Assembly (NCBI GenBank): GCA_024679065.1 | Contig: JAGIQG010000009.1 | Span: 92,008,001-92,072,000 of the forward strand | From: Sphyrna mokarran | Taxonomy: Eukaryota | DNA length: 64,000 nucleotides | Direction: 5' to 3' | In this document: positions 7,911 through 59,163 of the stretch, one piece after another | How the letters are laid out: the number at the start of each line of letters is the position of its first letter | Position numbering within the stretch: position 1 is the stretch's first letter | Translations under genes and position numbers: made by a program | The notes under the pieces: model-generated | The model's database searches: none | Seen by the model: the letters and a program-made list of their open reading frames with translations, nothing else | What the model was told of the DNA's origin: nothing

Positions 7911-8076
7911 CTCTCTGAATGCCTCATAGCAACCTGGTTCTTTCAGGGAAACAGTGAAATAGTTTCAGAAAGGAATCCATCTGTTCCTCTGTGAGACAGC
8001 AACCATTTGGCACACAGTTCCACTCCACAAGTACCAGAGTGGTAGCTGCTGAGTGACCCCTCACCAGTCCTCTTAC

Positions 8077-8493
8077 CTTATATTTCTGCTCTGCACTCTG
8101 GAGTGACAGGAGCTCATGGTCTGAATGGGAGCTTGAATCTTTGCAATCGTCACAGAGGAGAATCAGATCCTCCTCACAGAACAGCACCAACTTCTTTCCA
8201 TGTTCCTCACAGTGAGTCTGCTCCTTTGCCCTCTTCAGGTTCACCTCCAGTTGCCGAGCTTCCGAGCAGAGATTAGCCAACACCCTGTTACTGGTCATAT
8301 TTCTTTGGGGGAGAAGCTGCTGACATTCTGGGCAGGATACAGTCTCATCCTTCTTCTCCCAACACTTCTGGATGCACGATTTACAGAAGTTGTGCTCACA
8401 GTCCAGCCGCACCGGCTCCACAAACAGAGACTGACAGATGGAGCAGGTTAAATCCTTGGTTAGGTTGAGGACCTGTTCTTTACTGACAGCCAT
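8077..8493 (-). CDS. TRIM gene A exon 1: RING (C3HC4) + B-box2 of a TRIM39/TRIM69/A33-like E3 ubiquitin ligase
   Basis: ATG at 8493 (MAVSKEQVLNLTKDLT). RING: CSICQSLFVEPVRLDCEHNFCKSCIQKCW..CPEC. B-box: CEEHGKKLVLFCEEDLILLCDDCKDSSSHSDH. Donor AAG|gtaag at 8077/8076; 417 bp, phase 0. Confidence 0.95.
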
Positions 8494-8591
8494 TTTCAGG
8501 TGAAATTCCTTGGTTAGACCGTACACATGAAGGTTCGTTTCTTTCCTCTCTGTCCTGGCTCACTGTGAAACTCGCTTTGCAATCTCTACCT

Positions 8592-16090: not shown

Positions 16091-17170
16091 TGTGAAGGGA
16101 GTCATAAGTTGTTTCTTGTTTGTAATGTATCACTGTTGAGCTTGGTCTCATTTTTCCCTGCTTTTGCCCTAAGCTTTGACCACTTTGCAGTGATTTGAAT
16201 GGGAAAATGATGCCAAGCTTCACAAAGAACCTGCTTTTTTTAATATGGGTTTCTTGTAGATTTTACTGGTTAGATACTTCTTCCCAGACCAGTCTGCAGT
16301 ATATAGCTACAGTGATAATGAATCTTCCTGTCTGCGGAACCAACTTCAAGTGAACAGCCTGCAGTTTGCTGTTTAATTTCATCTCCTGTTTAAACCCTTC
16401 AGAATTTCTATTAATTAAGTTTTGCTAGATTTCAACATCTTCCTGGACCAAGATACAAAACCAAAATGAAGACTCGGTGTGTGTAGAATCACGATAAAGC
16501 CGCAGAATCTTTACATGTGGTGATACTACACGTACTTCACTTTCACACCGGCTGTTTTCTCAAGCTGGATGTAAAGTGGTTTAGGATTATGTCTTTCTCA
16601 GCCATGTCACTGAAACCATGCCATCATTAACTGCCACCATGTTCCTGCTTCTGTTGTTTAATGTAAATATATTAACATATCCAAGGATTGATGAAATAAT
16701 AATGTGTATTCTTTATCTGAAGATAAAATGATGGATGCAGTTTACATAGATATAGATTACAGATAGATTTGGAAAGATGCCAAATATAGTACCTGTTCCT
16801 GCTACAGTTTGGCCAAGTTCTCCATCCTTGTTTGTGCCAGCAGAGGGGCATGATCAGCTGAAGAATTCCCATCCTATTTTTACCTTGTTGCTTGATGACT
16901 GACTCACAGGGCTAATGCATCATGTCCTGTTGAGATATGCAATGATACACAGTAGTTTTGAGATGCACAACCTTAAAGGTATATGCACATCTTGTCACAA
17001 TCACAGTCCAAGATCTCAGAGCATGGAATACTTACAATTCACTCACCCAATACTCTCCACCATTTATTGCCAGGACTCTTCCCCAATTTTGTTTCCTGTC
17101 GTATGTTAATGTGTGACTTGTGCAACACTTATTCATCAGGGGACATACTTTGAAACAATAATTTATCAAT

Positions 17171-17687
17171 CTATGGTTCAGAATGATGCAGTTTAAGGGG
17201 GGAGGCATTTTCACCCTCATTGTGTAATCCAAGATGGGAAAAAGGAAAGAGTTTCTCAATGAATGTGTTAGTGAAATTGTGGAGAACGGACATATTGTCA
17301 GCATTCTAAAAATTAACTTGTCCTCCCTCATAATCCAGGAAATGGTCTTGGGCTTTATACTCAGAGTGAATTGAATGGTTGGGGTTTCTGCAGCTCCATA
17401 TTTATTCCCACTGCTACGAGCAGGTCCCATTTTTATTATCCCTTTCTTGTTAGCTGATTCTTTGGCCACACCCCCTATCCACCTAGTTTTGTCCCCGACC
17501 TCCATCTCCCAGTAGCGTTTCCCTAATGTGAAACCCTGTGACCCCAGGAGACTGGCTGTCATATTGAATCTCTTGGAGTTACCTGGAATCTGTAATTTTG
17601 TGTTGCTGCGTCTCACACTGGACAGGCCCTCAGACTGGATGAAGTTATGAGGTGCTGTGTTTGGGTCCAGGGCCAATGAGGCTGGGA
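17171..17687 (-). pseudogene. TRIM gene B PRY-SPRY (B30.2) exon, pseudogenised
   Basis: Acceptor cccccag|TC CCA GCC, then VPASLALDPNTA..LLGSQGFTLGKRYWEMEVGDKTRW. The GYW segment is missing. A frameshift follows KPKTI, and the shifted frame reads [33 protein letters not shown]..PLKL, with an in-frame stop. Confidence 0.9.
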
Positions 17688-18149
17688 CTGGGGGAAATAA
17701 AAAAAAGTTCATGTCAAATATTTTAGACAGAAGAAGTTGGATGAACACTAGTTAAGATCAAAATAATCAGGTAAAAGCAAAATACTACATATACCGGAAT
17801 CTGAAGCAAAAATAGAAAATGCTGGAAAATCTCAGCAAGTCTGACAGCATCAGTGGGGAGATTTGGAGCAGGTCTAGATGACCTTCATCATGATCAATCA
17901 AGATCAGTTGTCTGTATAACTGGACTCAATACACATCCAATAATTTATTTTTATTCTTTCAAGAGACCTTGATTGCTGGACCAACATTTATTACCTATCC
18001 CTAATTGCCCATGAGAAGGCGGCAGTGCTACTCTCTTGTTAAACTGAGACAATCTTTCTGTTGTATTTTTGTACAACTGGGTGGCTTGTTAACCCATTTG
18101 AAAGTGCAATTATGAGGCAACAAGATTGCTGTGGGTGTCACATGGAGTG

Positions 18150-42250: not shown

Positions 42251-42400
42251 AAGCAAACTTTACTATCTATTCTGAATCACACACCTAGGATAATGAAATA
42301 CTCCTGGCCAGGGAACTCTCAACATTGTCTCGTGATACTGTCAATCTGATACTCTCAGTGGATATAAAGTGAGACTGAGGGTACATAGTAAACATTCATT

Positions 42401-42619
42401 AAAGTAACAAGCAGCATGTTGTAACACAGGATAGCACATTAATCAGGAGGAAGCTATTATAATAGTAATATAATTCCTCTGCGTCCAGACACGACACTGG
42501 GGAGAAGCAGCTTATCACGTGCAGCAGACCAGGTAACCGGATCCAGTGAGACTGACTGGATGGTTCTGGTCACTGGTTTAGCAAGGAATAGGAAATCTGA
42601 CATCTGCCTTTTGCCACAG
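42401..42619 (-). repeat. left arm of a diverged inverted repeat of about 220 bp (partner 46177-46401)
   Basis: The reverse complement aligns along its length with 46177-46401. The ORF track shows the same pseudo-peptide CGKRQM..KPVTRTI.SVSLD on opposite strands. Confidence 0.85.
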
Positions 42620-42849
42620 TCTATTGAACAGACCTTTAAACATTGGACTGAGGGACACGTGTCCCACAAAGGGCAACATGATCAGCTAATGTTGATTGAG
42701 GGATACGTTTTGACAAGACACGCAGGAGTATTGCCCTCACTGATGTCCAGCCCAGAGGGACACTCTATTGGTGGAGAGGAAATTCTGAGGGACCACTGCA
42801 CTGTTGGATGGCCAGCACAGGGAAACGCTACTTGGTGGAGAGAAGTGGA

Positions 42850-45800
42850 GAACCACAGCAATGACTCTTAACTACCCTCTGAAATAGCCTAGCAAACCAC
42901 TCAGTTGTATCAATTGCTACATAGCCTCAACAAAGAAATGGACCATTGGCCTAAGCACTGGAAAAGACAACAGCAAAACAAACAGCCCTGCCTACTTGTA
43001 AATTTCTCCTTACTAACATCTGGGAGCTAGTGTTAGGATTGGGAGAGTTGTCTCACAGACTAGTCAAGCAACAGCCTGATATAATCATTCTCATAGAATC
43101 ATCCCTTACAGATAACCCTCAGCATCCCAGGATATGTCCTGTCTCACCAGCAGGCAGATCCAGCAGAGGTGGTAGCACAGTTGGAAGTTGCCCTGGGAGT
43201 CCTTAACATTGTCTCTGGACCCCATGAAGTCTCATGGTTTCAAGTCTCATGGGCAAGGGAGCCTCTTACTGGTTACCATGTACTGTCCTCCATCAGCCGA
43301 CGGGTCAGTACTCTTCCATGTCGAACAACACGTGGAGGAAGCAGTAAGGATGGAAAGGGCGTAAAATATACTCTGGGTTGGAGATTTCAATGTCCACCAC
43401 CACGAGTGGCGTAGCAGCAGCACTACTGATCAAGCCGGTCTGATCCTAAAGGATAAAACTGCTGGACCGGGTCTGCAGTAGGTGGTGAAGGAATCAACAA
43501 GAGAAACAACATCCTTGACCTCACCCTTACCACTCTGCCAGCTGCAGATGTATCTGTCCACGATAGTACTGTTAAGAGTGACCACTGCATAGTGCTTGTG
43601 GAAACAAAGTCCCACTTACACATTGAGAATAACCTCCATTGTGTTGTGTGGCACTATCACCGTGCTAAATGGGACAGACTTCGAACCAATCCAGCAACTC
43701 AAGTCTGGGCATCCATGAGGCCCTGTGAACCATCAGCAGTGGTGGAATTGTACTCCACAATCTGCAACCTCATGGCCTGGCATATCCCCCGCTCAACCAT
43801 GACCATCAAACCAGGGGATCAACCTTGGTTCAATGGAGAATTTAGGAGGGCATGACAGGAGCCCCACCAGGCATACCTAAAAATGAAATGTTAATCTGCT
43901 GAAGCTACCAAACAGGACAATTTTCTTGCCAAATGGCAAAAACAGCCAGTAATAGACAGAGCTAGTTGAACCCACATCCAATGGATCAAATCTAAGCTCT
44001 GCAGCCCTTTCACATCCAGTCAGGATTGGTGGTGGACAATAAACAAATCACTGGAGGAGGAAGCTCCACAAATTTCCCCATCTTCAATGATAAAAAAGCT
44101 TAGCACATTGGTGCAAAAGATAGGTTGAACTATTTGCAGCAATCTTCAGCCTGAAGTGACGTGTGGATGATCCGTCTAGGCCTCCTCCAGTAGTGAGAAA
44201 AATCTCAGATGCCAGTCTCCAGCCAATGCAATTCACTCCATGTGATATGAAGAAACAGTTGGAGACACTGGATACTGCAAAGACGATGGGTCTTGATCAT
44301 TTTCTGACAACAGTACTGAAGTCTTGTGCTCCAGGTCTTGCTGTTTCCCTAGCCAAGCTCTTCCAGTACAGTTACAACACTGGCATTTACCTAACTATGT
44401 GGAAAATTGCCCAGGTATGTCCTGTACACAAAAAGCAGGACAAATCCCGCCTGGCCAATCATCAGTAAAGAGCAAAGAACAAAGAACAAAACAGCACAGG
44501 AAACAGGCCCTTCAGCCCAACGAGCCCGTGCCGTCACCTCAATGTTCCCACCTCTACCCATGATCCCTGTCTATGTTTATAGATCTATGGATTGAAACCA
44601 AATTTGAGACAATTTAGGGAGAATTTGTTCTGCCAATCTATCGATAAGGTTGTTAAGAAGGCATACGGAGTCTTAGCTTTTATTGGTAGGGGGACTGAAT
44701 TTCGGAGCCGCAACGTCATGTTGCAACTGTACAAAACTCTAGTGCGGCCGCACTTGGAGTATTGTGTACAGTTCTGGTCCCCGCATTATAAGAAAGATGT
44801 GGAGGCATTGGAGAGGGTACAGAGGAGGTTTACCAGGATGTTGCCTGGTATGGAGGGCAGGTCTTATGAAGAGAGGCTGAGGGATTTGAGGTTGTTTTTG
44901 TTAGAAAGAAGGCGGCTAAGAGGAGACCTTATTGAAACATATAAGATGATTAGAGGTTTAGATAGGGTGGACAGTGATAGCCTTTTTCCTAGGATGGAGA
45001 AAGCTAGCACGAGGGGACATAGCTTTAAATTAAGGGGTGATAGTTATAGGACGGATGTCAGAGGTAGGTTCTTTACCCAGAGGGTGGTTAGGGAGTGGAA
45101 TGCCCTGCCTGCAGCAGTTGTAGATGCGCCAAGTTTGGTGGCGTTTAAGAGGTTAGTTGATAAGTATATGGAAGAGAAGGGAATGGTTTAGTTTGGAGGG
45201 GCATTGCTTTTTATATTGGTCGGCGCAACATCGAAGGCCGAAGGGCCTGTTCTGTGCTGTAATGTTCTATGTTCTATGTTCTATCTCTGTAGGAGAGTAA
45301 CTCACCTTCTGACTCCCTGGAGCCTATTTACCATCTACTAGGCACAAGTCAGGAGTGTGATGGAATACTCCCCACTTGCCTGGATGGGTGCAACTCCCAC
45401 AACACTCAAGGAACTTGACACCGTCAGGACAAAGCAGCCTGCTTGATTGGCATCACACCTACAAGCATTCAATCCCTCCACTACCGACACTCAATAGCAG
45501 CAGTGTGTTCTATTTACAAGGTGCACTGCAGCAATTCACCAAAGATCCTGAGACAGAACCTTCCAAACTCATGACCACTTCCATCAAGAAGTTCAAAGGC
45601 AACAAATAAATGAGAACACACCAACTGCAAATTCCCTTCCAAGCCATTCACCATCCTGACTTGGAAATGTAGCGTCTTTCCTTTGCAGTCGCTGGGTCAA
45701 AATCCTGAAATTCCTCACTAACGGCATTGTGAGTCACCCACAGAATATGGACTGCATGTTCAAGAAGGCAACTCACCACCACCTTCTCAAGGGTAGTTAG

Positions 45801-45862
45801 GGATGGGCAATAAATGTTGGTCAGCCAGCAATGCCCATGTTCCAAGAATGAATTTTAAAAAA
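42850..45862 (+). mobile_element. degenerate CR1/L2/jockey-group LINE (APE plus partial RT) with CR1 insertions replacing the RT core
   Basis: VKQQPDIIILIES..IPGYVLS; WVGDFNVHH; SDHCIVLVETKS; LAKLFQYSYNTGIY.TMWKIAQVCPVHKK; AQVRSVMEYSP. An A-rich tail lies at about 45860. Confidence 0.8.
44640..45283 (+). mobile_element. young CR1 LINE 3' fragment
   Basis: Uninterrupted ORF KVVKKAYGVLAFIGRGTEFRS..LYKTLVRPHLEYCVQFWSPHY..; ends in (GTTCTAT)n. Confidence 0.92.
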
Positions 45863-46150: not shown

Positions 46151-46176
46151 TTGATTAGGATTTTAATGTGTACGTT

Positions 46177-46401
46177 CTGCGGTAAAAGGCAGATGACACA
46201 TGCCCTGTTTCCTGATAAACCAGTGACGAGAACCATCCATTCAGTTTCACTGGATCTGGTTATCAGACCTGCTGCACATGATAAGTAGCTTCACTCCAGT
46301 TTAGTGCTCAGATGCAGAGGAGATTATATTACTGTTACAACAGCTTCTCTTCTGGTTAATCAGTGTCCTGTGCTTCTTTACAATATGCTGCTTGTTACTT
46401 T
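46177..46401 (+). repeat. right arm of the inverted repeat (partner 42401-42619)
   Basis: Aligns along its length with the reverse complement of 42401-42619. Confidence 0.85.
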
Positions 46402-47939
46402 CCTGAACATCTGCTGTGTTTCTATAGTCTGTTCTGGTAAGCCATTCAAACAGTATTTGCAAGGGGGTGGGTGGTCTATAGACCAAGTGCTCATGTGATG
46501 GTGGGCTATTAAAAGGCTCATATGGCAGAAGTGTGTGCGTTCTCTGTGGAGAATGAACAGAGTGGGAGCAGCCAAGAACTGCTCAGAGTGTTAAATAAAC
46601 TATCATTGTTTTAAGTCCTTAGTTGCTAGTATTTGGAACCCAGCACTTCTGCCAGGACCCTTTCCAGAGTTGACAGCATCGCAGGACAGCATGATCCCTG
46701 TAGGAGAGGGTTACTGTGATGAGTTGTATTGATTTTTTTTTTGCAGTGTTTTTGACCGGAGATGTTATTTCATGGGTTGGCTGCTATTATTGAAATGCAC
46801 AAACATATTATAATCATTTTTTATTCAATTGTGGGATATGGGCATTGCTGGTTAGCCAACATTTACTACCTATCCCTAGTTGCCCTTGAGAAAGCGGTGA
46901 TGAGTTGCCTTCTTAAAACGTTGCAGTCCCTGTGCTGTGCGTTGATCCGCAAGCCATCAGGGAGGAAGTTCCAGGATTTTGACTCAGCAGTTGCAAAGGA
47001 ATGATGATATATTTCCAAGTCAGGATGATGAGTGGCTTGGAGGGGAACTTGCAGGTGGTGGTGCTCCCATTTATTTGCTGCCCTTGTCCTTCTAAATGGA
47101 AATGGTCATGGTTGGAAGGTGCTGTCTAAGGCACTTTGGTGAATTTCCCACTGAGATGGGATGTCTTGGAACTGTAATTTGCAAGGGGAGAGAAAGGAAA
47201 GTGAGGGGAGGAGGAGAGGATTGGGAAAGGCAATGGGATTTAAAGTATGGAACAAAAATGAAAAGACGGTGGAATTGGGAATTGAATGCAAATGTAGAAA
47301 GGCAAGGAGAAAGATTTTGAACAATACAGGGGCCCTTTTCTGGGTGGATGTTTGTTTTAGTTTTCTTTTTCGTTTTATCATGTAATGAACCAGGTTTTAG
47401 CTTTGCCTCCTGGACATTAACGTCAACTTGGCTAAGGAACACAAAAGGAAACTTAGCTGAAGTGAGTTCTTTTTGTGCAGGTTGTTGTTTAATAACACAA
47501 GAAAATTACAGCAAGATTTTTTTTCCTGAATACTCTTCTCCTGCTCTCCTGCATGGGCTAGCACTTATTGCCAATCCTTAATTATCCTTGAGTGCACCTC
47601 AGAGGGCAGAGACCATTTGAAAAGTCAACTACATTGCTGTGGATCAGGAGTTACATGGAAGCTGGTCAGGTAGAGGACATAGGTGAATCAGGTGGGTTTT
47701 TATGACAATTGACAATAATTTCATGGTGCAGTGGTTAGCACTGCTGCCTCACAGCACCAGGGACCCGGGTTCGATTCCTATGTGGAGTTTACACATTTTC
47801 CTCGTGTCTGTGTGGGTGCCCTACAGGTGCTCCAGCTTCCTCCACGATAGAAAGACGTGCAGTTTATATGGATTAGCCATGCTAAATTTCCCTTAGTTTC
47901 CCAATATGTATAGGTGAGGAGGAATGGCCTTTATAATTT

Positions 47940-48295
47940 TTTTATCATTCATTCATGGGACATGGGTGTTGCTGGCTGGCCAACATTTATTACCCATTCA
48001 TAGTTGCCCAAGGACAGCTGAGCATCAACCACATTGCTGTGGTTCTGGAGTCACATGTAGATCAGACCAGGTAAGCTCAGCAGGTTCCTTTCCCTAGAAG
48101 ACATTATTGAACCAGATGGGTTTTTTGGACAATTGACAATAGTCTCATGGTCATCATGGATTCTTAATTCCAGACATTTTTCATTAAAATCACATTCCAT
48201 CAGCTGCTGTGGCATGATTCGAACCAAGATCAAGTATTAGCTGAATTTCTGGATTAACAATCTAGCGATAATACCACTAAGCCATTGCCTCCCCT
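47940..48295 (-). mobile_element. tRNA-derived SINE (same family as 35493-35860)
   Basis: The reverse complement starts GGGGAGGCAATGGCTTAGTGGTATTATCGCTAGA and has the shared tail. Confidence 0.82.
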
Positions 48296-48522
48296 TGTAG
48301 ATTACCCCTTAGTTTGTCTGTGCAAGAAAGTGAATGAGTGTGACTCTGTTTGATGCGATAAAATGCCCCTCAAATTAAAAGCATCTGGTGACAGATTAGC
48401 GAGCTGTCTTAGGAATAACATTTGCCGAAACAAATGAAGGTCTGACATATGCAGGTGCAGAAAGATTGAGAGAGAGAGAGAGACAGAGATGCAACATATC
48501 CTCATATTGAAAATTAGCATAT

Positions 48523-48594
48523 CGCAGAGTGGTGCAGCAGAAGCATGCTGGGCCCATAACCCAGAGGCTGATGAATCAAAACCGTTCCCTGCTA
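48523..48594 (+). pseudogene. initiator tRNA-Met (CAT) pseudogene
   Basis: 72-nt colinear match to vertebrate tRNA-iMet, with GCTGGGCCCATAACCCAGAGG intact. It carries about 10 substitutions, several of the CpG-decay type. A1 is lost, the acceptor stem is mispaired and the B-box is mutated (GAATCAAAACC). Confidence 0.85.
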
Positions 48595-48597
48595 TTA

Positions 48598-48920
48598 GGG
48601 GCAGCATGGTGGCACAGTGGTTAGCCCTGCTGCCTCACAGCACCAGGGACCCAGGGTTTGATTCCCAGCTTGGGTCACTGTCTGTGTGGAATCTACATGT
48701 TCTCCCTGTGTCTGTGTGGGTTTCCTCTGGGTGCTCCAGCCTCTCCCACACTCCTAAGATGTGCAGGTTAGGTAAATTGACCATGCTTAGTGTCACAGGG
48801 ACTGGCTAGGGTAGATGCATGATAGATTCATGGGATGTTGCAGGGATAGGGCCTGGATGGCATTGTGGTCAATGCAGACTCGATGGGCCAAATGGCCTCA
48901 TTCTGCACTATAGGATTCCA
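48598..48920 (+). mobile_element. full-length tRNA-derived SINE (HE1/V-SINE-like)
   Basis: GGGCAGCATGGTGGCACAGTGGTTAGCCCTGCTGCCTCACAGCACCAGGGACC, followed by a CR1-like tail. Further copies at about 47725, 55080-55400 (minus), 55900-56190, 57245-57440 (minus), 57700-57955, 60463-60740 and 61840-61995 (minus). Confidence 0.85.
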
Positions 48921-49459
48921 TGAAAGACATACTTTCAGCTCTGTGTTTAAACCACTCTGCACGATGAATGAAGTTTCCTACAAACCGGTAACCATGCACT
49001 TTCAGGAATACCCCATTTGCTGTGAAGCCTTCGGGACACTCAGAGGTTGTGACAGGCACAGTATAAATGTAAATTCCTCCTGAAACTCCTCCTGTTTCAC
49101 CGGTGGGGGTGACACTGCAGGCGGTGTGATCTCTAACCCTGCCCTCTGGCTCCACCTTTTTCTTGTAGAAATCACAGTGAACTTTGGCACTGCTCAATCT
49201 GTTGCTGTGGCCCAAGAATGACTTTTTGTTGTAAATTTCTAAACAAACTATAGAATTTATTGCGGTGCCTGAGTGAGTCAAGGCCGATGTGATATGGAGA
49301 GAATTAGCTGCAGACTCTGCAACAATTCAACTGATGCCAGAGCTTAGACAAGCTGATTGTGTTGTTAACTTGAATTTGGCATATTGGACAATGTCACCTA
49401 TGGTGGGAAAATGACAGGTGAGGAACTTTCAAATACAGACTCTTGGCATCCATTCACAG

Positions 49460-50360
49460 GATTACAGAGTCATAAGATGCACAAAAGACCCTTTGGCACA
49501 TCAAGTCTGCACCGACACGCGAGAAACACTTGACCTCTCAAATAATCCTATCTACCAGCAGTTGGCCCAAAGCCTTGAATACTATGATTACCAATTGCTC
49601 ATGCAAGTATTTTTAAAGGATATGAGGCAACCTACCTCTATTACCCTCCCAGACAGCACATTCCAGACCATTACCACTCCCTTACCCATCCTCATATCCC
49701 TCTTAAATCTCCTGCCACTCACCTTGAACTTCATAATCTTGTACACCTCGATTAGGTTGCCTCTCAGTCTTGTCTGCTCCAACGAAAACAACCCAAGCCT
49801 ATCCAATTGCTCTTTGTAGCTTAAACGTCCCAGCCCTGGTGAATCTCCTTTGCAGCCCCTCCAGTGCAATCACATCTTTCCGATAATGTGGTGACCAAAA
49901 CAGTACACATTATTCCAACTGTGGCCCCACCAAAGTTCCATACAACTGCAACATGACTTTTCTGCTTTTGTAATTTATATCTCGATTATTAAAGGCAAGT
50001 GTCCCATATGCCCTTTTCACTGCCCTACGGACTTCAGAGATCAATGGACAAACACAATAATGTCCTTTTGTTCCATAGAATGTCCTCATCTGATTGAATA
50101 CTTCCTTATTAAGTTACTCTTTCCAAAGATTATTATGCCACACTTTTCAGGGTTAAATTCCATCTGCCACTTACTGGCCATCAAACTATGCTTTCTATAT
50201 CAGCCTCACTGTTAACTACCTGGCCAATCTTTGTGTAATCCGCAAATTTACTAATCCTACCCCACATAAACCCATCTATGTTGCTTGTATAAATGAAGAA
50301 CAACAGGGGACCTAGCACAAATCTTTCAGATACACCACTGGACGAGGAGTCTGAAAACCC
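49460..50360 (-). mobile_element. CR1 LINE fragment
   Basis: SGVSERFVLGPLLFFIY..ISKFADYTKIG; LSYKEQLDRLGLFSLEQTRLRGNLIEVYKIM. Confidence 0.85.
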
Positions 50361-51838
50361 CAACTTCCATATCCCAAATGATTCAAAATTGTTTCCTTGA
50401 TTGTTAAAGTAATCTTTTATGGGATGTGGATGTAGCTGGTTAGGTCAACATTTACTACCCATCCCCGATTGCCTTTGAACTCAGTGGCTTGCTAAGCCAT
50501 TTCAGAGTCAACCACACTGCTGCGGCTATAGATTCACATGTAGACCAACAGGGTGTGGATGACAGATTTCATTCCCCTAAAGGCATATTAGTGAACCAGG
50601 TGAGATTTTACAACAATGGTTTCTTGATCATTATTAGGAAACTTTTTAATTCTAGATTTTTAGTGAATTCATATTTCACCATCTGCCGTATGTCAAGTTC
50701 AGACTGGGTTCCTGAAGCCTTACCCTGGGGTCACCAGATTAGTACATCAGAGAAAATATCACTGCGCCAACGTCTCTGCCATTTTGGTTCCCAACTCTCC
50801 AAACAACAAGAAGCATTGGTTCTTATTAATATAAATCCAAAATACTATAAATGCTGGAAAACTGAAATGAAAACAGAAAGCATTGGCTAAATTTAGCAAG
50901 TCAGACAGCCTCCGTAAAGATAGAAACAGAAGAATGTTTCAAATCCCTACAACTCTTCCCAGTCTGTTGCTAACCACCACCCCACTCCTAATAGATTTGG
51001 CTTCTTCATTGGATCTGTTAGTCCCTCTCTGTCCCAGAGAAAAGAATCTCAATTGGCCCTCATTGCTCCAGCCTCAGACCAAGGACTCAGGGAAAATCTT
51101 TTTCTCAACTTCTCCATGACTTTGATATGCTTCTGAATTGACAGGATCTGAACTTGGATACAGTGCCTGATTGGGGTCTTTGGAATTCTCCATCCTAGGG
51201 AGCTCTGGATGCTCAACAATGCATTCTCTCAGCAGTGAATGTGGCAGATTCCAGGGTAGGAACCGAATCGAAGCAGGGTATTGGGCTGGACACACAGTAT
51301 ATCAGAGCAGAAGTTGGCCATTTGATCCATCGAGTCTGCTCTGCAATGAGATCATGACTGATCTGATGTGATAATCCTCAACTTCACTTTCCCATCTTAT
51401 CCTGATAGCTCCCGATTCTTTTACTGATTAAGAATCGAACTATCTCAGCCTTGGACATTCTTAGTGATCCAACCTCTACAGCCCTCTGTGCTAAAGAATT
51501 CTACTTATTCACTATCCTCTGAGGATAGAAGTTCCTCCTCTTCTCTTTTAAATGCATGACCCCTTACTCTGAGATTATGACTTCTGTTCTGAGACTCTCT
51601 CACAAGAGAGAACGACCTCTCAGCATCTACTCTATTAAATCCTCAGCGAATCCTGTCACTGGAATTCCACTGTCCTGTCCACCATGTGAAGCAGAGTGAG
51701 CCAGTGGGGGGAAGAGAGGGGGTGTGGACTACTCCTGCTCCTATTTTTTATGCTGTAATGTAGCATTAACCATTGACATTCTTACCACCAGTTATTTATA
51801 ATTGTTTTTGAGATTGGTCCCTGCTTGTGATACCACAG

Positions 51839-52099
51839 ATTTTCACATCCTGGCATTTTACTACTTACTGAACCTTGGTCAGGCCGAGCTTCCCGAGTAC
51901 AGCTTGGTGGCGATGCTGGATGACTATCAGATAGTCTATTTCGATAGCACCCTGGACCGCATCGTGCCCAGACAGCAGTGGATGTCTGACTCCTTCCAGA
52001 GAGATCACTGGGTGGCCATGACAATCACGATGGCGGGATTCCATGGTCTGATCAGAGGGAACGCTGAGATATTTTACCAACAACACGGTGGAGCTGCAG
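51839..52099 (+). CDS. non-classical MHC class I heavy chain, alpha1 exon
   Basis: cacag|...G|gtaagt, 261 bp, phase 1/1: (D)FHILAFYYLLNLGQAELPEYSLVAMLDDYQIVYFDSTLDRIVPRQQWMSDSFQRDHWVAMTITMAGFHGLIRGNAEIFYQQHGGAA. Class I motifs H3, PE, DD, FDS, PR..W and W60 are present. Confidence 0.93.
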
Positions 52100-53154
52100 G
52101 TAAGTGGCCTCACAGAGAGAGTGCGGTGACAGTGTGTCCAGAGGAAAGAATTCAAGTACCTATTCATTCTAATTCCATTTTCCAGCACTTAGTCCATGGC
52201 CTCGTATGCTATAGCAGTTCAAGTGCTCATCCAAATAATTCTTAAGTGTTGAGGCGTCCTGCCTCTACACCCTTTCTGACCACCGTCTGAGTGAAAAAGA
52301 TTTTTCCTCAAATCCCCTCTAAATCTGTGGCCCTGATCTTAAACTGATGTCACTTGATTATTGACCCCTTTTATTAAAACGTTTCTTGCTAACCACACTA
52401 ACTTTATCCCTCCATTATTTTGTGCACCTCACTAATAACATTTCAAATTTGATATTATGTAAAGCATTCCAAAGATGTGCGGGTTTGGTGAAATGAAAAT
52501 TGTCCCTCAGTATCTAGAGAATGTGCAAGTTAGATGAATTGGCAATGCTAAATTATCCAAATGTTTCCCAAGATGTATGGGTTAAATAGATGATAAATAT
52601 GTGGGGTTACAGGGATAGGACAATGGACAGAGTCAGAGTATAATATTCTATCGGAGGGTTGGTGCAGAGCTGTTGCAGCCTTGGTGGGCTGAATGGCCTC
52701 TTCCACACTGTAGGGGTTATATGATTTGATGATTCTATAAAATGCAAAACTAGCTCTGTTTCTTTCAATACTGTGGTCCTCTGAGCTGCCTCTGTGCATT
52801 TACAATTGTAGGTTATATTCATACAACGTAGATTATCATGTCAAACACGTCACCCAATTTTAATGGAAGTAATTCCCTCCAATGGGAAATCAAGGACACA
52901 TCCAGGGATCCTGGAGTTTTTAGCCTCTCATTTTACAATAGTGGGAGAGTCTTTGGCAGTTGTCTTTCCCTATTGAGCTTTTGCAGGGGTCGCTCAAAAT
53001 GTTAGTGTGTCTCTCGGAACGTAGTCCATAGAATGTGCCAGCCTGTGACAGGTTCTCTTTGACAACTCTTGGTTCTGAAGACACACCATGTTTTAGGTAA
53101 GACAGAGGGCCACTTTCACCCCAGACCATGGTCCTCCAATAGGGTACCCAGACT

Positions 53155-54583
53155 TGCACTCAAATCCTATGGATCAACTGCTAGAGATATTCACAGAAAT
53201 CTTCAACCTCTCTTTACAACAATCTGAGGTCCCTATCTGCTTCAAGAAGATGACCATCATCTCAGTACCTAAGAAAAACCAAGCAGCGTGCCTTAATGAC
53301 TATTGGCCTGTCGCTCTGTCATCCAACATTATGAAGTGTTTCGAAAGGTTAGTTTTGACACAAATCAATTCCAATCTCCTGGACTACCTAGATCCACTAT
53401 AGTTCGCCTACTGCAGCAATAGACCCAGGATACCATTTTCATGGCCCCGCACTCAACTTTGGAACACCTAGATAACAAGGATACCTATGTCAGACTCCTA
53501 TTTATTGACTACAGCTCAGCCTTCAACACTATTTTTCTCACGAAACTCATCTCCAAACCCCTTGGCCTGTGCCTTGGCACCTCCTTCTGTGAATGGATCC
53601 TGAACTTCCTAAATCATAGATCACAATCAGTAAGGATAGGCAACAATACCTCCTCCATGATCATCCTCAACATCAGTGCCCACAAGACTGTGTTCTCAGT
53701 CCCCCACTATACTCTTTGTACACCTATGACTGTGAGGCCAAATTCCTCTCTAATTCATTTTTCATGTTTGCTGATGACACCATCGTAGTGGGTCGGATCT
53801 CAAACAATGGCGAGACAGAGATAGGAATGAGATAGAGAATCTGGTAAATTGGCACAGCAACAATAATCTCTCCCTCAATGTCAACAAAATGAAGGAGATT
53901 GCCATTGACTTCAGGAAGTGTAAAGGAGAACGTGCCTGTGCCTACATCAATAGGGACAAAGTAGAAAGGGTTTATGTGCCCAGAATACCAACAACTTGAT
54001 CCTAGTCCTCCCATGCCAACACTATAGATAAGAAAGCCACCAACACCTCTACTTTCTCAAAAAACTAATGAAATTTGACATGTCATCTACGACTCTCACC
54101 AACTTTGATAGATGCACCATAGAAAGCATTCTTTCTGGTTGTATCGCAGCTTGGTATGGCTCCTGCTTTGCCCAAGACTGCAAAGGGCTACAAAAGATCA
54201 TGAGTATAGCCCAATCCATCATGCAAACCAGCCTCCCATCCATTGATTCTGCCTACACTTCCCACTGCCTCGGCAAAGCAGCTAGCATAATTAAGGACCC
54301 CATGCACCCTGGACACTCTCTCTTCCACCTTCTTCCTTTGGGAAAAAGATACAAAAGTCTGAGGTCACATACAACTGACTCAAGAACAGTTTCTTCCCTA
54401 CTGCAGTCAGACTTTTGAATGGACTAACATTGCATTAAGTTGATCTTTCTTTACCCCCTAGCTATGACTGTAATACTACATTCTGCAGTCTCTCGTTTCC
54501 TTGTCTATGAATGGTAAGTTTTGTCTATATGACGTGCAAGAATGTGTATGTTCATATATGTGACAATAATAGATCAAATCAAA
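53155..54583 (+). mobile_element. Rex1/Babar non-LTR retrotransposon (RT to 3' end) in the class I alpha1-alpha2 intron
   Basis: DQLLEIFTEIFNLSL..CFKKMTIISVPKK..CLNDY.PVAL; [15 protein letters not shown]; CTIESILSGCIAAWYG. The tail is AATAGATCAAATCAAA. Confidence 0.9.
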
Positions 54584-55533
54584 GCAGGTGATGTTTAAGT
54601 TGGTATGTCCCTGGGAACAGTCTATAGAGCACTACGAGCCTCCTTGTGCAGCAGCTGAGAATGTAAAAAGGGTGCTTTGTAATTCTAGCGCTGCTGAGGA
54701 AAAGGAATCTTCCAGTTGGAGATGAGTGATGTGTCTTCCCCACTGCAGCCACCACAAGAGCAGTGTGCAGGCTCGGGGAGACCCCGGGCTCTTAGGAAGA
54801 ACCTGATCAATTGGGTCTTTTCCACCAAGTTATGTCTTGGTTCTTGTTTGTAAGTTCTGGCAATTTTTCCAGATGATTTTGACAGCCTGTTCATGGAATC
54901 ATTAAAGAATACAAAGCATTTGCTTCCTGCAGGATGGTGCTTCCCATACCCCAGCTGTTCTTGATTTCTTCCCAATAAAAGCATGAGCTTCCATGAAGCT
55001 GTTCACCCCCAATCATCTCCACCTCTCTCACTTTCTTTGAGATGCTACTCAAGACTTCAAAAGCTTTTGAATCCCTGTTCTAACATTGAATTCTTACAGT
55101 GCAATCTGGCCTACCGAGTCTGCACAAATTCTCCAAAAGACCATCCCACTCAGGCCCTCTCTCCACTCTATCCCTATAACCCTGTGCATCTACCATGGCT
55201 AATTTACCTAATCTATACATCCTTGGATATTTAAGTGTAATTTACCATGGCCAGTCTACCTAACCTGCACATCTCGGAATGTGGGAGGAAACCTACACCA
55301 CAAGGGGAAGAATGTACAAACTCCACATAGTCACCCAAGGCCAGAATTGAACCTGGGTTCATGGTGCTGTGCTAACCATTGTGCCACAGGGCTGCCCAAT
55401 CCTCCCATGTGGTTCCAAGTTAAATCTAACTCAATAATGCTCCTATGAGGAATGTTATGTGATGTTTAAATCACTGTATAAATACAAATTTTTGCCAATC
55501 TGACCAAATATTTTGCACATTGTGAATTTACAG

Positions 55534-55809
55534 GTATTTTCTTTATCCAGGGAATGTGCGGCTGTGAAATATACAGTGATAACACCACAAATGGATTTAT
55601 AAAGGTGGGATATGATGGGGAAGATGCATTTGTTTTTAATAAGGACAGAACCAGCTGGAGAGCACTCAATCCAGAGTTCCAGAGCTTAGCGAAAAGATGG
55701 AATGCCAACACCTTCATGAACAAGTACTTCAAGGCTCTGTTGGAAAAAGATTGCATGAAATGGCTGCTGATATACCTCGAGTATGGTCAAGGAATGCTGC
55801 AGAGGAGAG
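55534..55809 (+). CDS. non-classical MHC class I heavy chain, alpha2 exon
   Basis: tacag|...G|gtatgg, 276 bp, phase 1/1: GIFFIQGMCGCEIYSDNTTNGFIKVGYDGEDAFVFNKDRTSWRALNPEFQSLAKRWNANTFMNKYFKALLEKDCMKWLLIYLEYGQGMLQRR. C101/C164, YDGED and WL..YL are present. Confidence 0.95.
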
Positions 55810-56668
55810 GTATGGTGTCTAGAGGGAGTGCTCCCTGCGATTACCATGTGGCACAGACAGAAATTTTACAGCTCATTCGGCAGAAGGATTTTCCCTTCTT
55901 TTGCACTGCTGCCTCACAGCACTAGGGTCCCAGGTTCAATTCCATCCTCAGGTACGTGGGGAGTTTGCACATTCTCCCCCTGTCTGCGTGGGTTCCTCTG
56001 GGTGCTCCAGTTTCCTCTCACAGTCCAAAGATGAAGGGTTAGGTGGATTGGCTATGCTAAATTGAGCCTAATATCAGGGGATTACTAGAGTAGATGCGTG
56101 GCGTTGTGGGAATAGGGACTGCGTGGGATTGTGTCAGTTCAGAGACGATGGGCTGAATAGCCTCCTTCTGTAATATGGGGATTGTATGAAATCTGCCACC
56201 CTTATCCTATCTGACCTGCATGTGACTCCAGACCCAGGGGAAAGTAGCTGACTCTTAATTGCCCTCTGGAATCGAGGGCAGCCAGTGACATCCCGTGAAT
56301 GAATTTACAAAACAATTCATGCAAAAACAAACATCTGTCATGCTGGAAATCTGAAAGAGAAGGTGCAGGCAGGAAATTCTCAGCAGCTTCCGCTGAGAGA
56401 GAGGAAAAAGAGAGGGAGGAATTTTATGGTCTGGATGCGGCAGGTGAGATGTGGTTTGTGGGAGGTGTAGGGCCTTTCCAAAGGCTTCAAGGGGATTGGA
56501 AAACTAGTTAGCATAGTTAAGTATGTGGGTTATGGGGATAGGATTGTTGTTGGGGCAGGTTCGAAGAGCCAAATATCCTTCTTCTGTACTGTAGGGATTC
56601 TATGAGCATAATACTTTTTGTCGAAACTCCATGTTCAGCGATTTTTTGTCTTTGTTCCATTTTCTCAG

Positions 56669-56941
56669 CCACTCCCGAGGTGTACATTACGAACAGGAGC
56701 GAGGGCGAGCGAGTGCTAAGACTCTCCTGCCTTGTGACAGCCTTTTACCCATGGCCTATCGATGTGATGTGGTTGCAGAACGGTGATGAGGTCCTCAGTG
56801 TTGAAACCAGCGGCACGCTCCCCAACCAGGATGGGACATATTGGGTGATGAAAACGATGGAGCTCAGTGAAGATGGTGGGGGGATATATTCCTGTCGCAT
56901 TGAGCATGCCAGCCTCCTACAGGACCTCGATGTATGCTGGG
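56669..56941 (+). CDS. non-classical MHC class I heavy chain, alpha3 (Ig C1-set) exon
   Basis: tttctcag|...G|gtaagt, 273 bp: ATPEVYIT..LSCLVTAFYPWPIDVMWLQNG..LPNQDGTY..YSCRIEHASL..VCW. Confidence 0.95.
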
Positions 56942-58664
56942 GTAAGTTACAAGTGACAGGGCAGCAGAGCCAGCCCCTGTATGTGCTCCCTCAGCCTGAT
57001 TATTCAAAACAGGAAGCTCCACTGAGGGTGAGACGGTTTCACTTCTCATGGTCAGTCATTCTACGCTTACTTTTTAAAAGGTGAGGATCTATTAAATATT
57101 GGGAATCAAAGGGATTGGGCATTCCATCAGACCGAGGAATTCAGAAATAAGAGTACACCCTCGAACCTGCTTCATTGTTCAGTGACCAATTAGTGACCCA
57201 ACTCCATTTACCCATCTTTGTCCTACTTCTTCCCCATCTCCATGCATTTAGCATGGCCAATCCACCTAACCTCCATGTCTTTGGAGTGTGGGAGAAAACC
57301 GGAGAACCCAGAGGAAACCCACGCAGACATGAGGAAAACATGTAAACTCCACACAGACAGTGACCCAAGGTTGGTCAGAACTTTTTGATCCCTTGAACCT
57401 GGCGCCTTGGTGCTGTGATGCAGCCGTGCTAACCACTGTGTCAATACTAATACTGTTTTGCATTGGGATTGATCTTACTGAACGACAGACAGATCAATTC
57501 TGTGAGACAATAGGGTTTACTTCTACTTCTCACGCTTACAACTTCCTTTACTGTTACAGTGTTGACTAGGCCAAGATGTTTCACTTGTCCCACAGCAGGA
57601 GCTGCAACTGTTTTTTAAAGCTGGGTGGGAGAGGGGTTTGGGGAAAAAGTTTAATAGAATATAACAGAAAAGAGTATTTCACTGAGTGAACAATCAAGCG
57701 GCACTGTAGTTAGTGCCAGGGACCCAGGTTCAAATCCTGGTTTGGGTCATTTTCTGTATGACATTGTCTCTGTGTTTGCTCCGGATGCTCTGGTTTTCTC
57801 CACAGTCTGAAAGATGTGTGGATTAGGTGCACTGGCCATGCTAAATTCTCCTTCAGTGTACCCAGACCCGTGCTGGAATGTGTCGACCTGACGATTTCCA
57901 CAGTGACTTAATGCAGTGTTAATGTAAGCCTATTTGTGACACAAATACGTAAAGATTTATGGCCTGAATTTTTTGACTGAAAGAGGCTTGAATCCCAGCA
58001 TGCGGAGAGAATCGGACAATCCTGCTGCCATTTTAACGCTGTAATGAGTATTGATGACAGCAGGCTGTACTTCTGTCCTCATTTAGAAATAAGACATGTC
58101 TTTGGACAGCAGACGTCTCGTCAAATTTGCCAATAGGCCTCCAGCAGGCACAGCGCTGCGTTGGTCGGAAGAGGTATTGCAGGTCAGGTCTGGGGTTAAG
58201 TGCAAGGAGCCAGTCTAAGTTATGTGGCAGAGGTTTTGGCATGGTGGGAATGGGTGTTTTTTGAGGACGCAGGTGGGGACTGGGCTATTGTGGATGGCCA
58301 GTGGAATGTGGAGAGCCAGAGGTGTCTGCTCCTCTGAGGGGAGGATGTTTCCCCTCCCCAAGGTGACATTTGAGGAAGATGCAGCCCTCGCCGCACCCAA
58401 CCCCCTCCATTATCCTCACCCTTCTCCCAAGTAACAAAGTTCTTAACTTTTTCTGTTTCCCACCTTGAGACATTCAGTAGCCACCAGCCAGAAAGTTGAG
58501 GATAGGGGGAAAAGGTCCTTAAGTGGTCACTTTAAGGCCTTACTTGGGCATAAGTGAACTTCTCATCTGAGACCGTTCTTTCTCCACTAGTTTGCAGATC
58601 AATGAAGCTCAGAATTATTAGGAGGTTTATCATATAATATTAATTAATCTCTATGTGCCAGCAG

Positions 58665-58828
58665 ACAGAGTGACACAAAAAGGTGTGGAGGTCAGGATTA
58701 TGATTGGAGCAACAGCCATCTCACTCACTCTCCTTGGCATCATCATTGGCATTGGTTTCTGGAGGAAGAGACAGAGCAGGAATACTGGCATCAACCAGCA
58801 GATAATGGCAGAGATTGGCAGCAGATAA
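58665..58828 (+). CDS. MHC class I connecting peptide + transmembrane + cytoplasmic tail (terminal exon)
   Basis: Phase-1 acceptor (tandem CAGCAG, start at 58662 or 58665): DRVTQKGVEVR-IMIGATAISLTLLGIIIGIGFW-RKRQSRNTGINQQIMAEIGSR*. A hydrophobic helix is followed by a basic stop-transfer; TAA at 58826-58828. Confidence 0.85.
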
Positions 58829-59157
58829 TGGCAGAGATTGGCAGAGCCTAGCAGAGGAATGATAGAGACCAGCAGGCAATAACAGAGGCTGACAGAGATC
58901 CTTGGAGGTTAATAAAGACCCAGTAGAAACTGGTTTGGCTGGTGGCGATGTGCAGAAACTGAGGGGAGCAGGCAATGGAGATCACCAAGTGCAGGCATGG
59001 TGCACAATGAGCAACAGAGACCAACAACCAAGACCAGCCGAGGATGACAGAGATGAGAGAGTCAAGCAGCAACCAGAGACTCACAGCGATCAGCAGACAG
59101 TAACAGATATGGGACAAAGATTGTGCATCTGCCTTTTAAATATTATTGCACATGTAA

Positions 59158-59163
59158 AATAAA
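59158..59163 (+). terminator. candidate polyadenylation signal of the class I gene
   Basis: AATAAA overlapping the end of the purine-rich terminal-exon sequence. A second AATAAA lies at 58911-58916. Confidence 0.45.

Follow-up and report, generated by a model that had tools for sequence, protein, structure and literature searches.

Presentation of lipids and metabolites by class I-like molecules, as exemplified by CD1 and MR1, has long been placed in tetrapods or mammals with respect to its origin. MR1 is the mammalian presenter of vitamin B metabolites and binds its ligand through a Schiff base at Lys43; CD1 presents lipids in tetrapods, holding them in deep hydrophobic pockets, and CD1b, CD1c and CD1d are sorted to endosomes by a tyrosine-based motif in the tail. 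Among the other class I lineages that are relevant here, UEA is reportedly multicopy and found only in sharks, UCA is said to be restricted to dogfish (Squaliformes), and in UDA, 8 of the 9 invariant residues for peptide binding are reportedly intact. Recently, UFA and UGA pushed the presenters of hydrophobic ligands back to sharks. In two articles, both are called CD1-like, and crystal and mass-spectrometry data are taken to suggest lipids (PMC12562908, PMC10751288); the former, a 2025 review, states from a personal communication that UGA binds lipids (PMC12562908). The claim that UGA and UFA bind lipids goes back to this personal communication. The gene described here would add a third such lineage, again in sharks and rays, apparently with a groove more hydrophobic than in the other two, and with traits of its own: an invariant Cys99, the loss of six anchors and an MR1-like alpha2 domain. 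Could it be, then, that several distinct non-peptide presenters already existed in the first jawed vertebrates?

Structure of the gene

The window, that is, the whole 64-kb stretch of DNA that was analysed, contains a complete and intact MHC class I heavy-chain gene on the plus strand, the only class I gene that tblastn detects within it. The gene consists of five exons, one domain per exon, and every exon junction is GT-AG and in phase 1. The original prediction confined the feature to 51839-55809; the alpha1 and alpha2 exons do lie inside this span, and the rest of the gene, namely the leader, alpha3 and transmembrane/tail exons, lies outside it. Its description of the alpha1, alpha2, alpha3 and transmembrane exons as open, with canonical splice phases, holds for all four.

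The leader (signal peptide) exon (46385-46436) encodes MLLVTFLNICCVSIVCS plus the first base of an Asp codon and ends at the phase 1 donor G|gtaagc. This exon, which the original prediction did not include, was located by tblastn with the leaders of the orthologues P0130 (E 5.8e-4) and P0132 (E 1e-3); the codon split between leader and alpha1, completed by the first two alpha1 bases, is GAT (Asp), and P0132 reads the same across this junction (VSS-D-FHILAFYY). Several automatic gene models lack this exon, and now that the true leader is known, a correct expression construct can be designed. The alpha1 exon (51839-52099; 86 whole codons, 51841-52098) is followed by intron 2 (52100-55533), which spans 3.4 kb and contains transposon debris with open reading frames that look reverse-transcriptase-like by eye; a Pfam search with two of the transposon-like frames gave no match, in the case of the frame at 53441-53788 none at E 1e-3. 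The alpha2 exon (55534-55809; 91 whole codons, 55536-55808) carries C99, the C101-C164 pair and an N-T-T sequon. An alternative alpha2 acceptor at 55549-50 was discarded because it breaks the frame; the true AG is at 55532-33, and the junction is backed by the Mustelus orthologue.

The alpha3 exon (56669-56941; 90 whole codons, 56671-56940) encodes a C1-set immunoglobulin domain, and the last exon (58665-58828) a connecting peptide, a transmembrane segment and a short cytoplasmic tail that terminates with TAA at 58826-58828. The start of this exon agrees with the orthologue junction W-E-R-V-T-Q, and its product is 78% identical to residues 298-355 of P0136 (tblastn). The tail, RKRQSRNTGINQQIMAEIGSR, has no tyrosine, nor do the tails of the orthologues. 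This region is repetitive, with a 23-bp tandem duplication (2.1 copies, 100% match) across the stop codon at 58796-58844, and further downstream two AATAAA hexamers were spotted by eye as candidate polyadenylation signals, at 59158-59163 and 58911-58916 (all of these features on the plus strand). In Pfam, alpha2 matches MHC_I with E 7.5e-19 and alpha3 matches C1-set with E 1.2e-15, and the match of alpha1 to MHC_I (E 2e-4) falls below the curated cut-off; the locus thus displays the class I heavy-chain plan, with MHC_I-type alpha1 and alpha2, a C1-set alpha3, a transmembrane segment and phase 1 domain exons. The sole candidate sequencing run for the locus gave a weak match, at 5% of the sampled words.

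A shark and ray lineage beside UGA

The gene belongs to a conserved single-copy lineage of sharks and rays that is the sister group of UGA. In the database, 9 species of shark and 4 of ray each contribute one gene to the orthogroup, Pristiophorus having in addition a second, partial protein cluster. All members carry automatic NCBI names of the form "MR1-like", under which the lineage has remained hidden in databases, and a literature search turned up no paper that names it. The protein XP_078075269.1 of Mustelus asterias is 92%, 93% and 90% identical to the product of our gene in alpha1, alpha2 and alpha3, respectively; the values of the other 12 species, in the same order, lie between 87/82/71% and 66/69/56%, and the best proteins outside the orthogroup reach no more than 46%. 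In single-exon trees, alpha1, alpha2 and alpha3 each fall inside the orthogroup beside Mustelus, with SH-aLRT support of 99, 99 and 96. The full-ectodomain tree of natural proteins recovers the orthogroup with 100/100 and its union with UGA-type proteins with 96/90, and in the alpha1 tree the sister relationship to UGA has a support of 95. The original prediction was sound in leaving the lineage unassigned pending a phylogeny; its comparison to UEA and UCA, however, did not hit upon the nearest relatives.

UGA is also the nearest solved relative of the gene. The best sequence match of alpha1 (E 2.8e-21) is to 9CH4, titled 'Crystal structure of shark nonclassical MHC CLASS I, UGA' and released on 2026-03-18, and the same entry is the best structural match of a predicted model of the Mustelus orthologue, not of the Sphyrna gene itself (pLDDT 82.4; TM 0.95, rmsd 1.7 A, VIA Z 29.1, with the next chain at 27.9 and class I chains at Z 27-29). 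The two lineages, both present in sharks and rays, have in common G97, A123, M152, Y155, F156, L159, L160, F70 and the alpha1 helix motif A-G-F-H-G-x-x-x-G, a glycine-rich stretch that is invariant in the orthogroup. Nevertheless, identity between UGA and the gene is only 35-46% per domain. UGA-type proteins have Y7, Y59, R84, K146, an N86 sequon and F99, where the gene has F7, H59, Q84, R146, no N86 sequon and C99; they also keep W147 and Y171 and retain more of the anchors than our gene does, so the ligand of UGA need not transfer to it. Membership in UGA was rejected, the orthogroup being a sister clade and not a part of the UGA clade; furthermore, S. torazame, Pristiophorus and Leucoraja each have both a member of the lineage and a UGA-type gene, which makes the gene a locus separate from UGA.

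UFA, represented by PDB entry 8GM8 (released on 2024-11-27) and recognized among our sequences via a model of P0032, resembles the gene in being non-classical, in its hydrophobic groove, in its presence in sharks and rays, and in G97, and its alpha1 matches UFA with E 2.4e-11. However, overall identity is about 27%, alpha2 of UFA-type proteins is rearranged, carrying additional cysteines and no W133, and these proteins group in a clade of their own (100/99), so that the gene was not accepted as a UFA member. UEA and UCA, too, are non-classical lineages of shark class I whose anchors are reportedly eroded. Judged by the reported definitions of these groups, copy number, presence in four rays and the anchor count may argue against identity with UEA, UCA or UDA; UDA in particular was rejected, two of eight anchors being kept in the gene. 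A large multicopy shark clade in our trees, which might be UEA, lacks C101 and C164 and is far from the gene.

The groove and its probable ligand

Groove residues were read from an alignment with 13 orthologues and classical-looking class I rows, in HLA numbering anchored by alignment to 6LUP and MR1. At the eight peptide-terminus anchors Y7, Y59, R/Y84, T143, K146, W147, Y159 and Y171, the gene has F, H, Q, L, R, W, L and Y, so that only W147 and Y171 are kept, exactly as had been predicted. This count supports the assignment to non-classical class I, and the classical peptide-presenting (UAA) type was rejected. Within the lineage, none of the six replacements varies (F7 in 11/11 rows; H59, Q84, L143, R146 and L159 in 14/14), nor do Y171 and the small floor residues G97, C99 and A123 (each 14/14); the unpaired cysteine at floor position 99 is a trait specific to this lineage. 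The alignment further agrees with the prediction on the hydrophobic positions, L24, M63, M67, F70, L73, I74, I80, F81, I95, I114, V116, M152, Y155, F156 and L159 (those from 152 to 159 valid only when counted back from C164, there being a one-residue insertion between 147 and 164), on the small floor, on the absence of the N86 glycan sequon, and on the retention of C101, C164 and the beta2-microglobulin contacts W60, Q96, D119, G120 and D122. Both disulfides are intact.

The 37 groove positions include 24 with an aliphatic residue, F, M or C and 2 with a charged one, compared with 13 and 5 in the classical-looking rows, which were chosen for carrying the eight-anchor pattern. The mean Kyte-Doolittle value, taken over alignment positions from a list of HLA contacts and not derived from a structure, is +1.39; the classical-looking rows have -0.09, UGA-type proteins +0.38 and UFA-type proteins +0.84. 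By this measure, the predicted hydrophobic groove is the most hydrophobic among the shark lineages sampled. In 40 shark-ray pairs, conservation is 65.8% in alpha1 and 73.4% in alpha2 versus 57.4% in alpha3, so the groove domains are held more tightly than the Ig domain; 36, 39 and 26 residues, respectively, are invariant across sharks and rays.

The loss of anchors, the hydrophobic lining and the small floor jointly make a hydrophobic non-peptide ligand the most likely one, and with a probability of roughly 0.6 we regard the locus as an MHC-linked, probably functional non-classical class I gene of a carcharhiniform-type shark whose product holds such a ligand in its groove. The heavy chain would be made with a signal peptide, pair with beta2-microglobulin and be anchored in the membrane; its alpha1/alpha2 groove, which has lost six of the eight clamping residues for peptide ends and is lined almost wholly by Leu, Ile, Val, Met and Phe over the floor of G97, C99 and A123, would take up the hydrophobic portion of a non-peptide ligand that is itself conserved, whether the tail of a lipid or a small hydrophobic metabolite, and this ligand may be displayed to a receptor of T cells or of the NK type. 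This proposed function equals that of CD1, whose groove is likewise hydrophobic and anchor-less. Nonetheless, CD1 is far in sequence, the one CD1b-like protein in the tree set being the longest branch; the alpha2 disulfide is of the class I type, unlike that of CD1; and the tyrosine-free tail has no YxxPhi motif for CD1-type endosomal sorting, which speaks against a CD1-like role. Among all PDB chains, the best match of alpha2 is MR1 (74.7 bits), ahead of UGA (60.8) and the classical carp chain 5H5Z (59.2), and the matches include HFE (56.6) and ZAG (51.5).

Could the groove bind peptides after all? W147, R146, W167 and Y171, which persist at the C-terminal end of the groove, could along with D163 hold a peptide C-terminus, alpha2 is closer to peptide-type and MR1-type chains than to CD1, and tight conservation of alpha1 and alpha2 would suit any monomorphic ligand. 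Presentation of hydrophobic or modified peptides from a narrow and conserved set, after the manner of HLA-E/Qa-1 or H2-M3, is nevertheless unlikely considering the invariant replacements in the N-terminal pocket (Y7, Y59, Y159) and at the C-terminal end (T143, R/Y84) and the scarcity of charged groove positions. We also consider it improbable that nothing is presented, with a groove that is closed or occupied by a structural filler and a protein that serves as an NK-type receptor ligand or in transport, similarly to HFE, FcRn, MIC and ZAG. Loss of anchors is typical of such proteins, too, HFE and ZAG are among the alpha2 matches, and the glycine-rich stretch could allow closer packing of the helices; on the other hand, the predicted orthologue model overlays the open-groove UGA structure, the inward residues stay hydrophobic or small across the lineage, showing no drift, and the transmembrane anchor, beta2-microglobulin contacts and both disulfides are retained. 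That the locus is a silent or decaying copy is hardly credible: transposon-swollen introns, a decayed inverted copy of the 5' end and the recent duplication at the stop codon might hint at this, but the five open exons, the splice sites, disulfides and transmembrane segment are intact, and both the 90-93% identity to Mustelus and the residues invariant across sharks and rays argue against decay.

The match to MR1 suggests a further scenario, a presenter of small metabolites of the MR1 type, with an alpha2 domain possibly of common ancestry with that of MR1. In the sawfish orthologue, too, alpha2 matches MR1 first (70.1 bits, with carp at 65.0 and UGA at 54.7), whereas UGA-type alpha2 scores merely 45.5 bits against MR1, under many classical chains; an invariant Tyr aligns with MR1 Y152, C99 is invariant, and the pattern of conservation, with groove domains above alpha3 and one gene per species, is MR1-like. 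Yet the margin over carp class I in the ray is about 5 bits, alpha1 (27 bits) and alpha3 are not MR1-like, and R94, I96 and W156 of MR1 are replaced by Gly, Cys and Leu. Moreover, the Lys43 position (residue 41 of the query, aligned with K43A in 4LCW) is Ile in the gene and I, T, C or A in the 14 lineage rows, never K, so that MR1 by way of a Schiff base was rejected and the scenario as a whole appears very improbable. A more specific version, to which we likewise give little credence, is that of a monomorphic, functional elasmobranch counterpart of MR1, in which the thiol of Cys99, in the middle of the groove floor, would replace the Lys43 Schiff base and capture a small hydrophobic, thiol-reactive metabolite, and whose alpha2 would descend from a presenter predating the split between cartilaginous and bony vertebrates.

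The upstream region

The promoter-proximal block upstream of the start codon (46177-46384, plus strand) is conserved relative to a decayed inverted copy of promoter and leader at 42350-42625 (minus strand), with an open reading frame beginning MLLVTLMNVYYVPSVS that has no splice donor. The arms of the inverted repeat pair 42475-42619 with 46177-46321 (79%) and 42372-42443 with 46359-46430 (71%). A second class I gene attached to the inverted leader was considered, and tblastn detected none in the window. Within the promoter-proximal block, a putative IRF-type half-site, AGTTTCACT, was read by eye at 46243-46251.

The gene model and its flanks

On its + strand, the window holds a single complete gene for an MHC class I molecule. 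The original prediction of a hydrophobic-groove class I molecule at 51839-55809 was right in its observation, and a full gene model can be built on it. The alpha1 (51839-52099, translation FHILAFYY...QQHGGAA) and alpha2 (55534-55809, translation IFFIQGMCGCEIY...GMLQRR) exons that it had claimed are real and open, with GT-AG junctions, and are followed on the same strand by alpha3 (56669-56941) and by a TM/tail exon (58665-58828) that ends in the stop codon TAA (58826-58828). GT-AG boundaries are found at all junctions, with codons split after the first base. When the exons were searched one by one, unjoined, alpha2 matched Pfam MHC_I (E 7.5e-19) and alpha3 matched C1-set (E 1.2e-15); alpha1 gave a sub-threshold MHC_I match only (E 2e-4) and is therefore divergent. 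With seven class I proteins as queries, local tblastn on the window minus one stretch detected no further class I exons.

The leader exon, absent from the original finding, is located at 46385-46436, of which 46385-46435 matches the leaders of orthologues P0130 and P0132 (E 5.8e-4 and 1e-3, respectively, in a 21.8-kb search space). It reads ATG ... TCT G/gtaagc and encodes MLLVTFLNICCVSIVCS; its last base and the first two bases of alpha1 make up an Asp codon, an arrangement that is identical in the sevengill shark orthologue. With the leader at 46385, the gene therefore spans 46385-58828, and candidate AATAAA signals were spotted by eye at 58911 and 59158 (+). A 23-bp exact tandem duplication (58796-58844; 2.1 copies, 100% match) extends across the stop codon; long repetitive Q-rich tails occur in orthologues such as P0130.

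Also by eye, a candidate IRF/ISRE-type half-site, AGTTTCACT, is seen at 46243-46251, about 135 bp upstream of the start codon. A decayed inverted copy of the promoter and leader (42350-42625, -, against 46170-46445, +) lies some 3.6 kb upstream, with arms of 145 nt (79%) and 72 nt (71%), and has AGTCTCACT for the half-site; the leader ORF of this copy lacks a splice donor and is followed by no class I exons in the window. The promoter and leader exon are flanked on both sides by inverted repeat pairs (45570-45853 and 46823-47110; 50-95 nt, 81-85%), probably two oppositely oriented copies of a single transposon. In the RefSeq model of the Mustelus asterias orthologue (P0136, XP_078075269.1), the first 25 residues resemble not a signal peptide but transposon reverse-transcriptase sequence, the counterpart of which in the window is at 50163-50089 (-); the true leader is also missing from several other galeomorph gene models. 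Elsewhere in the window, TRIM-type exons at 7927-8526 (-) and 17035-17748 (-) encode RING and B-box (E 7e-10, 2e-9) and PRY (3.8e-11) domains, and their strand order implies two different TRIM-type genes or fragments.

A shark and ray orthogroup beside UGA

With alpha1 as query, HMMER against 1.84 billion representatives returned 127 matches at E <=1e-3, 16 at 1e-10 and a single one at 1e-30, the skate protein P0001, which is 71% identical; searches with P0001 and later with P0136 recovered the same tight group. This orthogroup comprises one protein cluster per species in the sharks Mustelus, Scyliorhinus torazame, Cetorhinus, Pristiophorus (where there is a second, partial cluster), Heptranchias, Stegostoma, Hemiscyllium and Chiloscyllium plagiosum and in the rays Leucoraja, Pristis, Mobula and Hypanus, to which cluster-member look-up added P0213 of Chiloscyllium punctatum. 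All members bear the automatic NCBI name "MHC class I-related gene protein-like" (MR1-like) except P0213 (hypothetical protein), and none has an author-given name. Identity to the window for alpha1, alpha2 and alpha3 is 92, 93 and 90% in M. asterias, 87, 82 and 71% in S. torazame and 66-74, 69-76 and 49-60% in rays, against 46, 40 and 42% for the best protein outside the orthogroup. On these figures, the shark that the window derives from is a rather near relative of Mustelus.

The alpha1 sequence and the predicted fold of an orthologue both place UGA nearest. The best PDB match of alpha1 is 9CH4 (E 2.8e-21; "shark nonclassical MHC CLASS I, UGA" in its Foldseek entry title, released 2026-03-18), followed by 8GM8 (2.4e-11; "... 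UFA", released 2024-11-27), an entry identified as UFA by modelling P0032, a UFA-type protein of a ray. An AlphaFold2 model of P0136 from a 52-row alignment (pLDDT 82.4; alpha1/alpha2 block means at least 80, with 80 and 83 at the junction and at least 88 elsewhere) has 9CH4 as its best Foldseek match (E 8.3e-30, TM 0.95, rmsd 1.7 A, 39% identity). VIA-align puts 9CH4 first (Z 29.1), ahead of chicken BF2 (27.9); MR1 and classical chains of chicken, duck and shark trail the best match by at most about 2 Z units.

For the trees, 236 stored proteins were reduced to 123 of 280-440 aa and, at 80% identity, to 83, always retaining the orthogroup, the UGA-type (P0004, with an alpha2 scoring 145.5 bits against 9CH4, P0006, P0218, P0221, P0244) and the UFA-type (P0026, P0032, P0228) proteins. 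In quick IQ-TREE trees of domain pieces of 70-105 aa (78, 80 and 80 rows), each exon falls within the orthogroup (SH-aLRT 99, 99 and 96) and adjoins Mustelus (89, 98 and 97). A more careful tree of 47 natural ectodomains, in which P0136 represents the gene, recovers the orthogroup (100/100) as sister to the UGA-type proteins (100/100), the two together at 96/90; the UFA-type proteins (100/99) join more loosely, at 89/86, in a join that carries a long-branch warning. Sharks and rays are present in both the orthogroup and UGA, so the lineages split before the shark-ray split. The two lineages occupy separate loci and coexist in S. torazame (P0133 alongside P0244, the latter 69% identical to UGA-type P0004 and 41% to P0133), in Pristiophorus (P0130 and P0004) and in Leucoraja (P0001 and P0221, for both of which the longest contig given has 127,421 bases and is probably one and the same).

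One account (PMC10751288) maps all elasmobranch MHC-Ib genes to the MHC and mentions UFA as an unpublished CD1-like lineage; another (PMC12562908) names UBA, UEA, UDA, UFA and UGA, describes UFA and UGA as CD1-like, single- or low-copy and present in sharks and rays, and refers to a personal communication on crystal and mass-spectrometry data that suggest lipids for both. Our literature search turned up a primary paper for neither UFA nor UGA, and no paper describing an eighth lineage; possibly, specialists already count the lineage of the gene, perhaps as a second UGA-like gene.

The groove and its likely ligand

Residues were compared in per-exon alignments with 13 orthologues, 4 UGA-type, 3 UFA-type and 4 classical-looking rows (one protein of a sawshark, one sturgeon and two lungfish class I proteins, picked because of their anchor pattern) and 7 of a multicopy shark clade without C101/C164; position numbers and the groove contact list follow HLA. 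At the eight peptide-terminus anchors, the classical-looking rows have Y7 (4/4), Y59 (3/4), R84, T143, K146, W147 and Y159 (4/4 each) and Y171 (3/4); the corresponding residues of the gene are F, H, Q, L, R, W, L and Y. The alignment columns thus bear out the replacements originally claimed (F7, H59, Q84, L143, R146, L159, with W147 and Y171 kept), and likewise all the claimed groove residues, the beta2m contacts and C101/C164, and the absence of an N86 sequon. Across the lineage, F7 is found in 11/11 rows covering the region, H59, Q84, L143, R146, L159 and Y171 each in 14/14, and W147 in 10/14, the other four, all from carpet sharks, having Leu. Lineage-specific residues are M63, M67, I80, F81, A26, F36 and Cys99, which is invariant (14/14) and has no partner cysteine in alpha1 or alpha2 of the S. 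mokarran gene; in place of the N86 sequon, a loop of alpha2 carries an invariant D-N-x-T sequon. Common to the lineage and UGA are G97, A123, M152, Y155, F156, L159, L160, F70 and the helix motif A-G-F-H-G-x-x-x-G.

Over 37 groove positions, the mean hydropathy of the gene is +1.39 (24 aliphatic, F, M or C; 2 charged) and that of ten orthologues +1.41, compared with +0.38 for UGA-type, +0.84 for UFA-type, +0.33 for the no-disulfide clade and -0.09 for classical-looking rows; by this rough alignment-based measure, the groove of the gene is the oiliest among the groups compared. Mean shark-ray identity (40 pairs) is 65.8% in alpha1, 73.4% in alpha2 and 57.4% in alpha3, with 36/86, 39/91 and 26/90 residues, respectively, invariant in the orthogroup; the ligand domains are therefore held tighter than the Ig domain, a pattern familiar from MR1 that would fit a fixed ligand and receptor. 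Among the class I molecules of cartilaginous fish, the gene belongs with the non-classical ones that have hydrophobic grooves, and it has traits of its own. A role as a presenter of a putative hydrophobic ligand is a reasonable reading, which conservation throughout the lineage and the closest relative of solved structure both support.

MR1 likeness of alpha2

Against all PDB chains, alpha2 of the gene matches MR1 best (74.7 bits, ahead of UGA at 60.8 and carp class I at 59.2), as does that of the sawfish orthologue (70.1, versus 65.0 for carp and 54.7 for UGA), whereas UGA-type alpha2 scores 45.5 bits against MR1, beneath dozens of classical chains; the likeness therefore belongs to the lineage of the gene, with a small margin in the ray. 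Mammalian MR1 is the most similar solved structure to alpha2 (55536-55808), which is not so for the sister lineage UGA. Most working residues of MR1 are nevertheless gone: the gene has Ile opposite Lys43, Gly opposite R94, Cys opposite I96 and Leu opposite W156. Y152 aligns with an invariant Tyr of the lineage.
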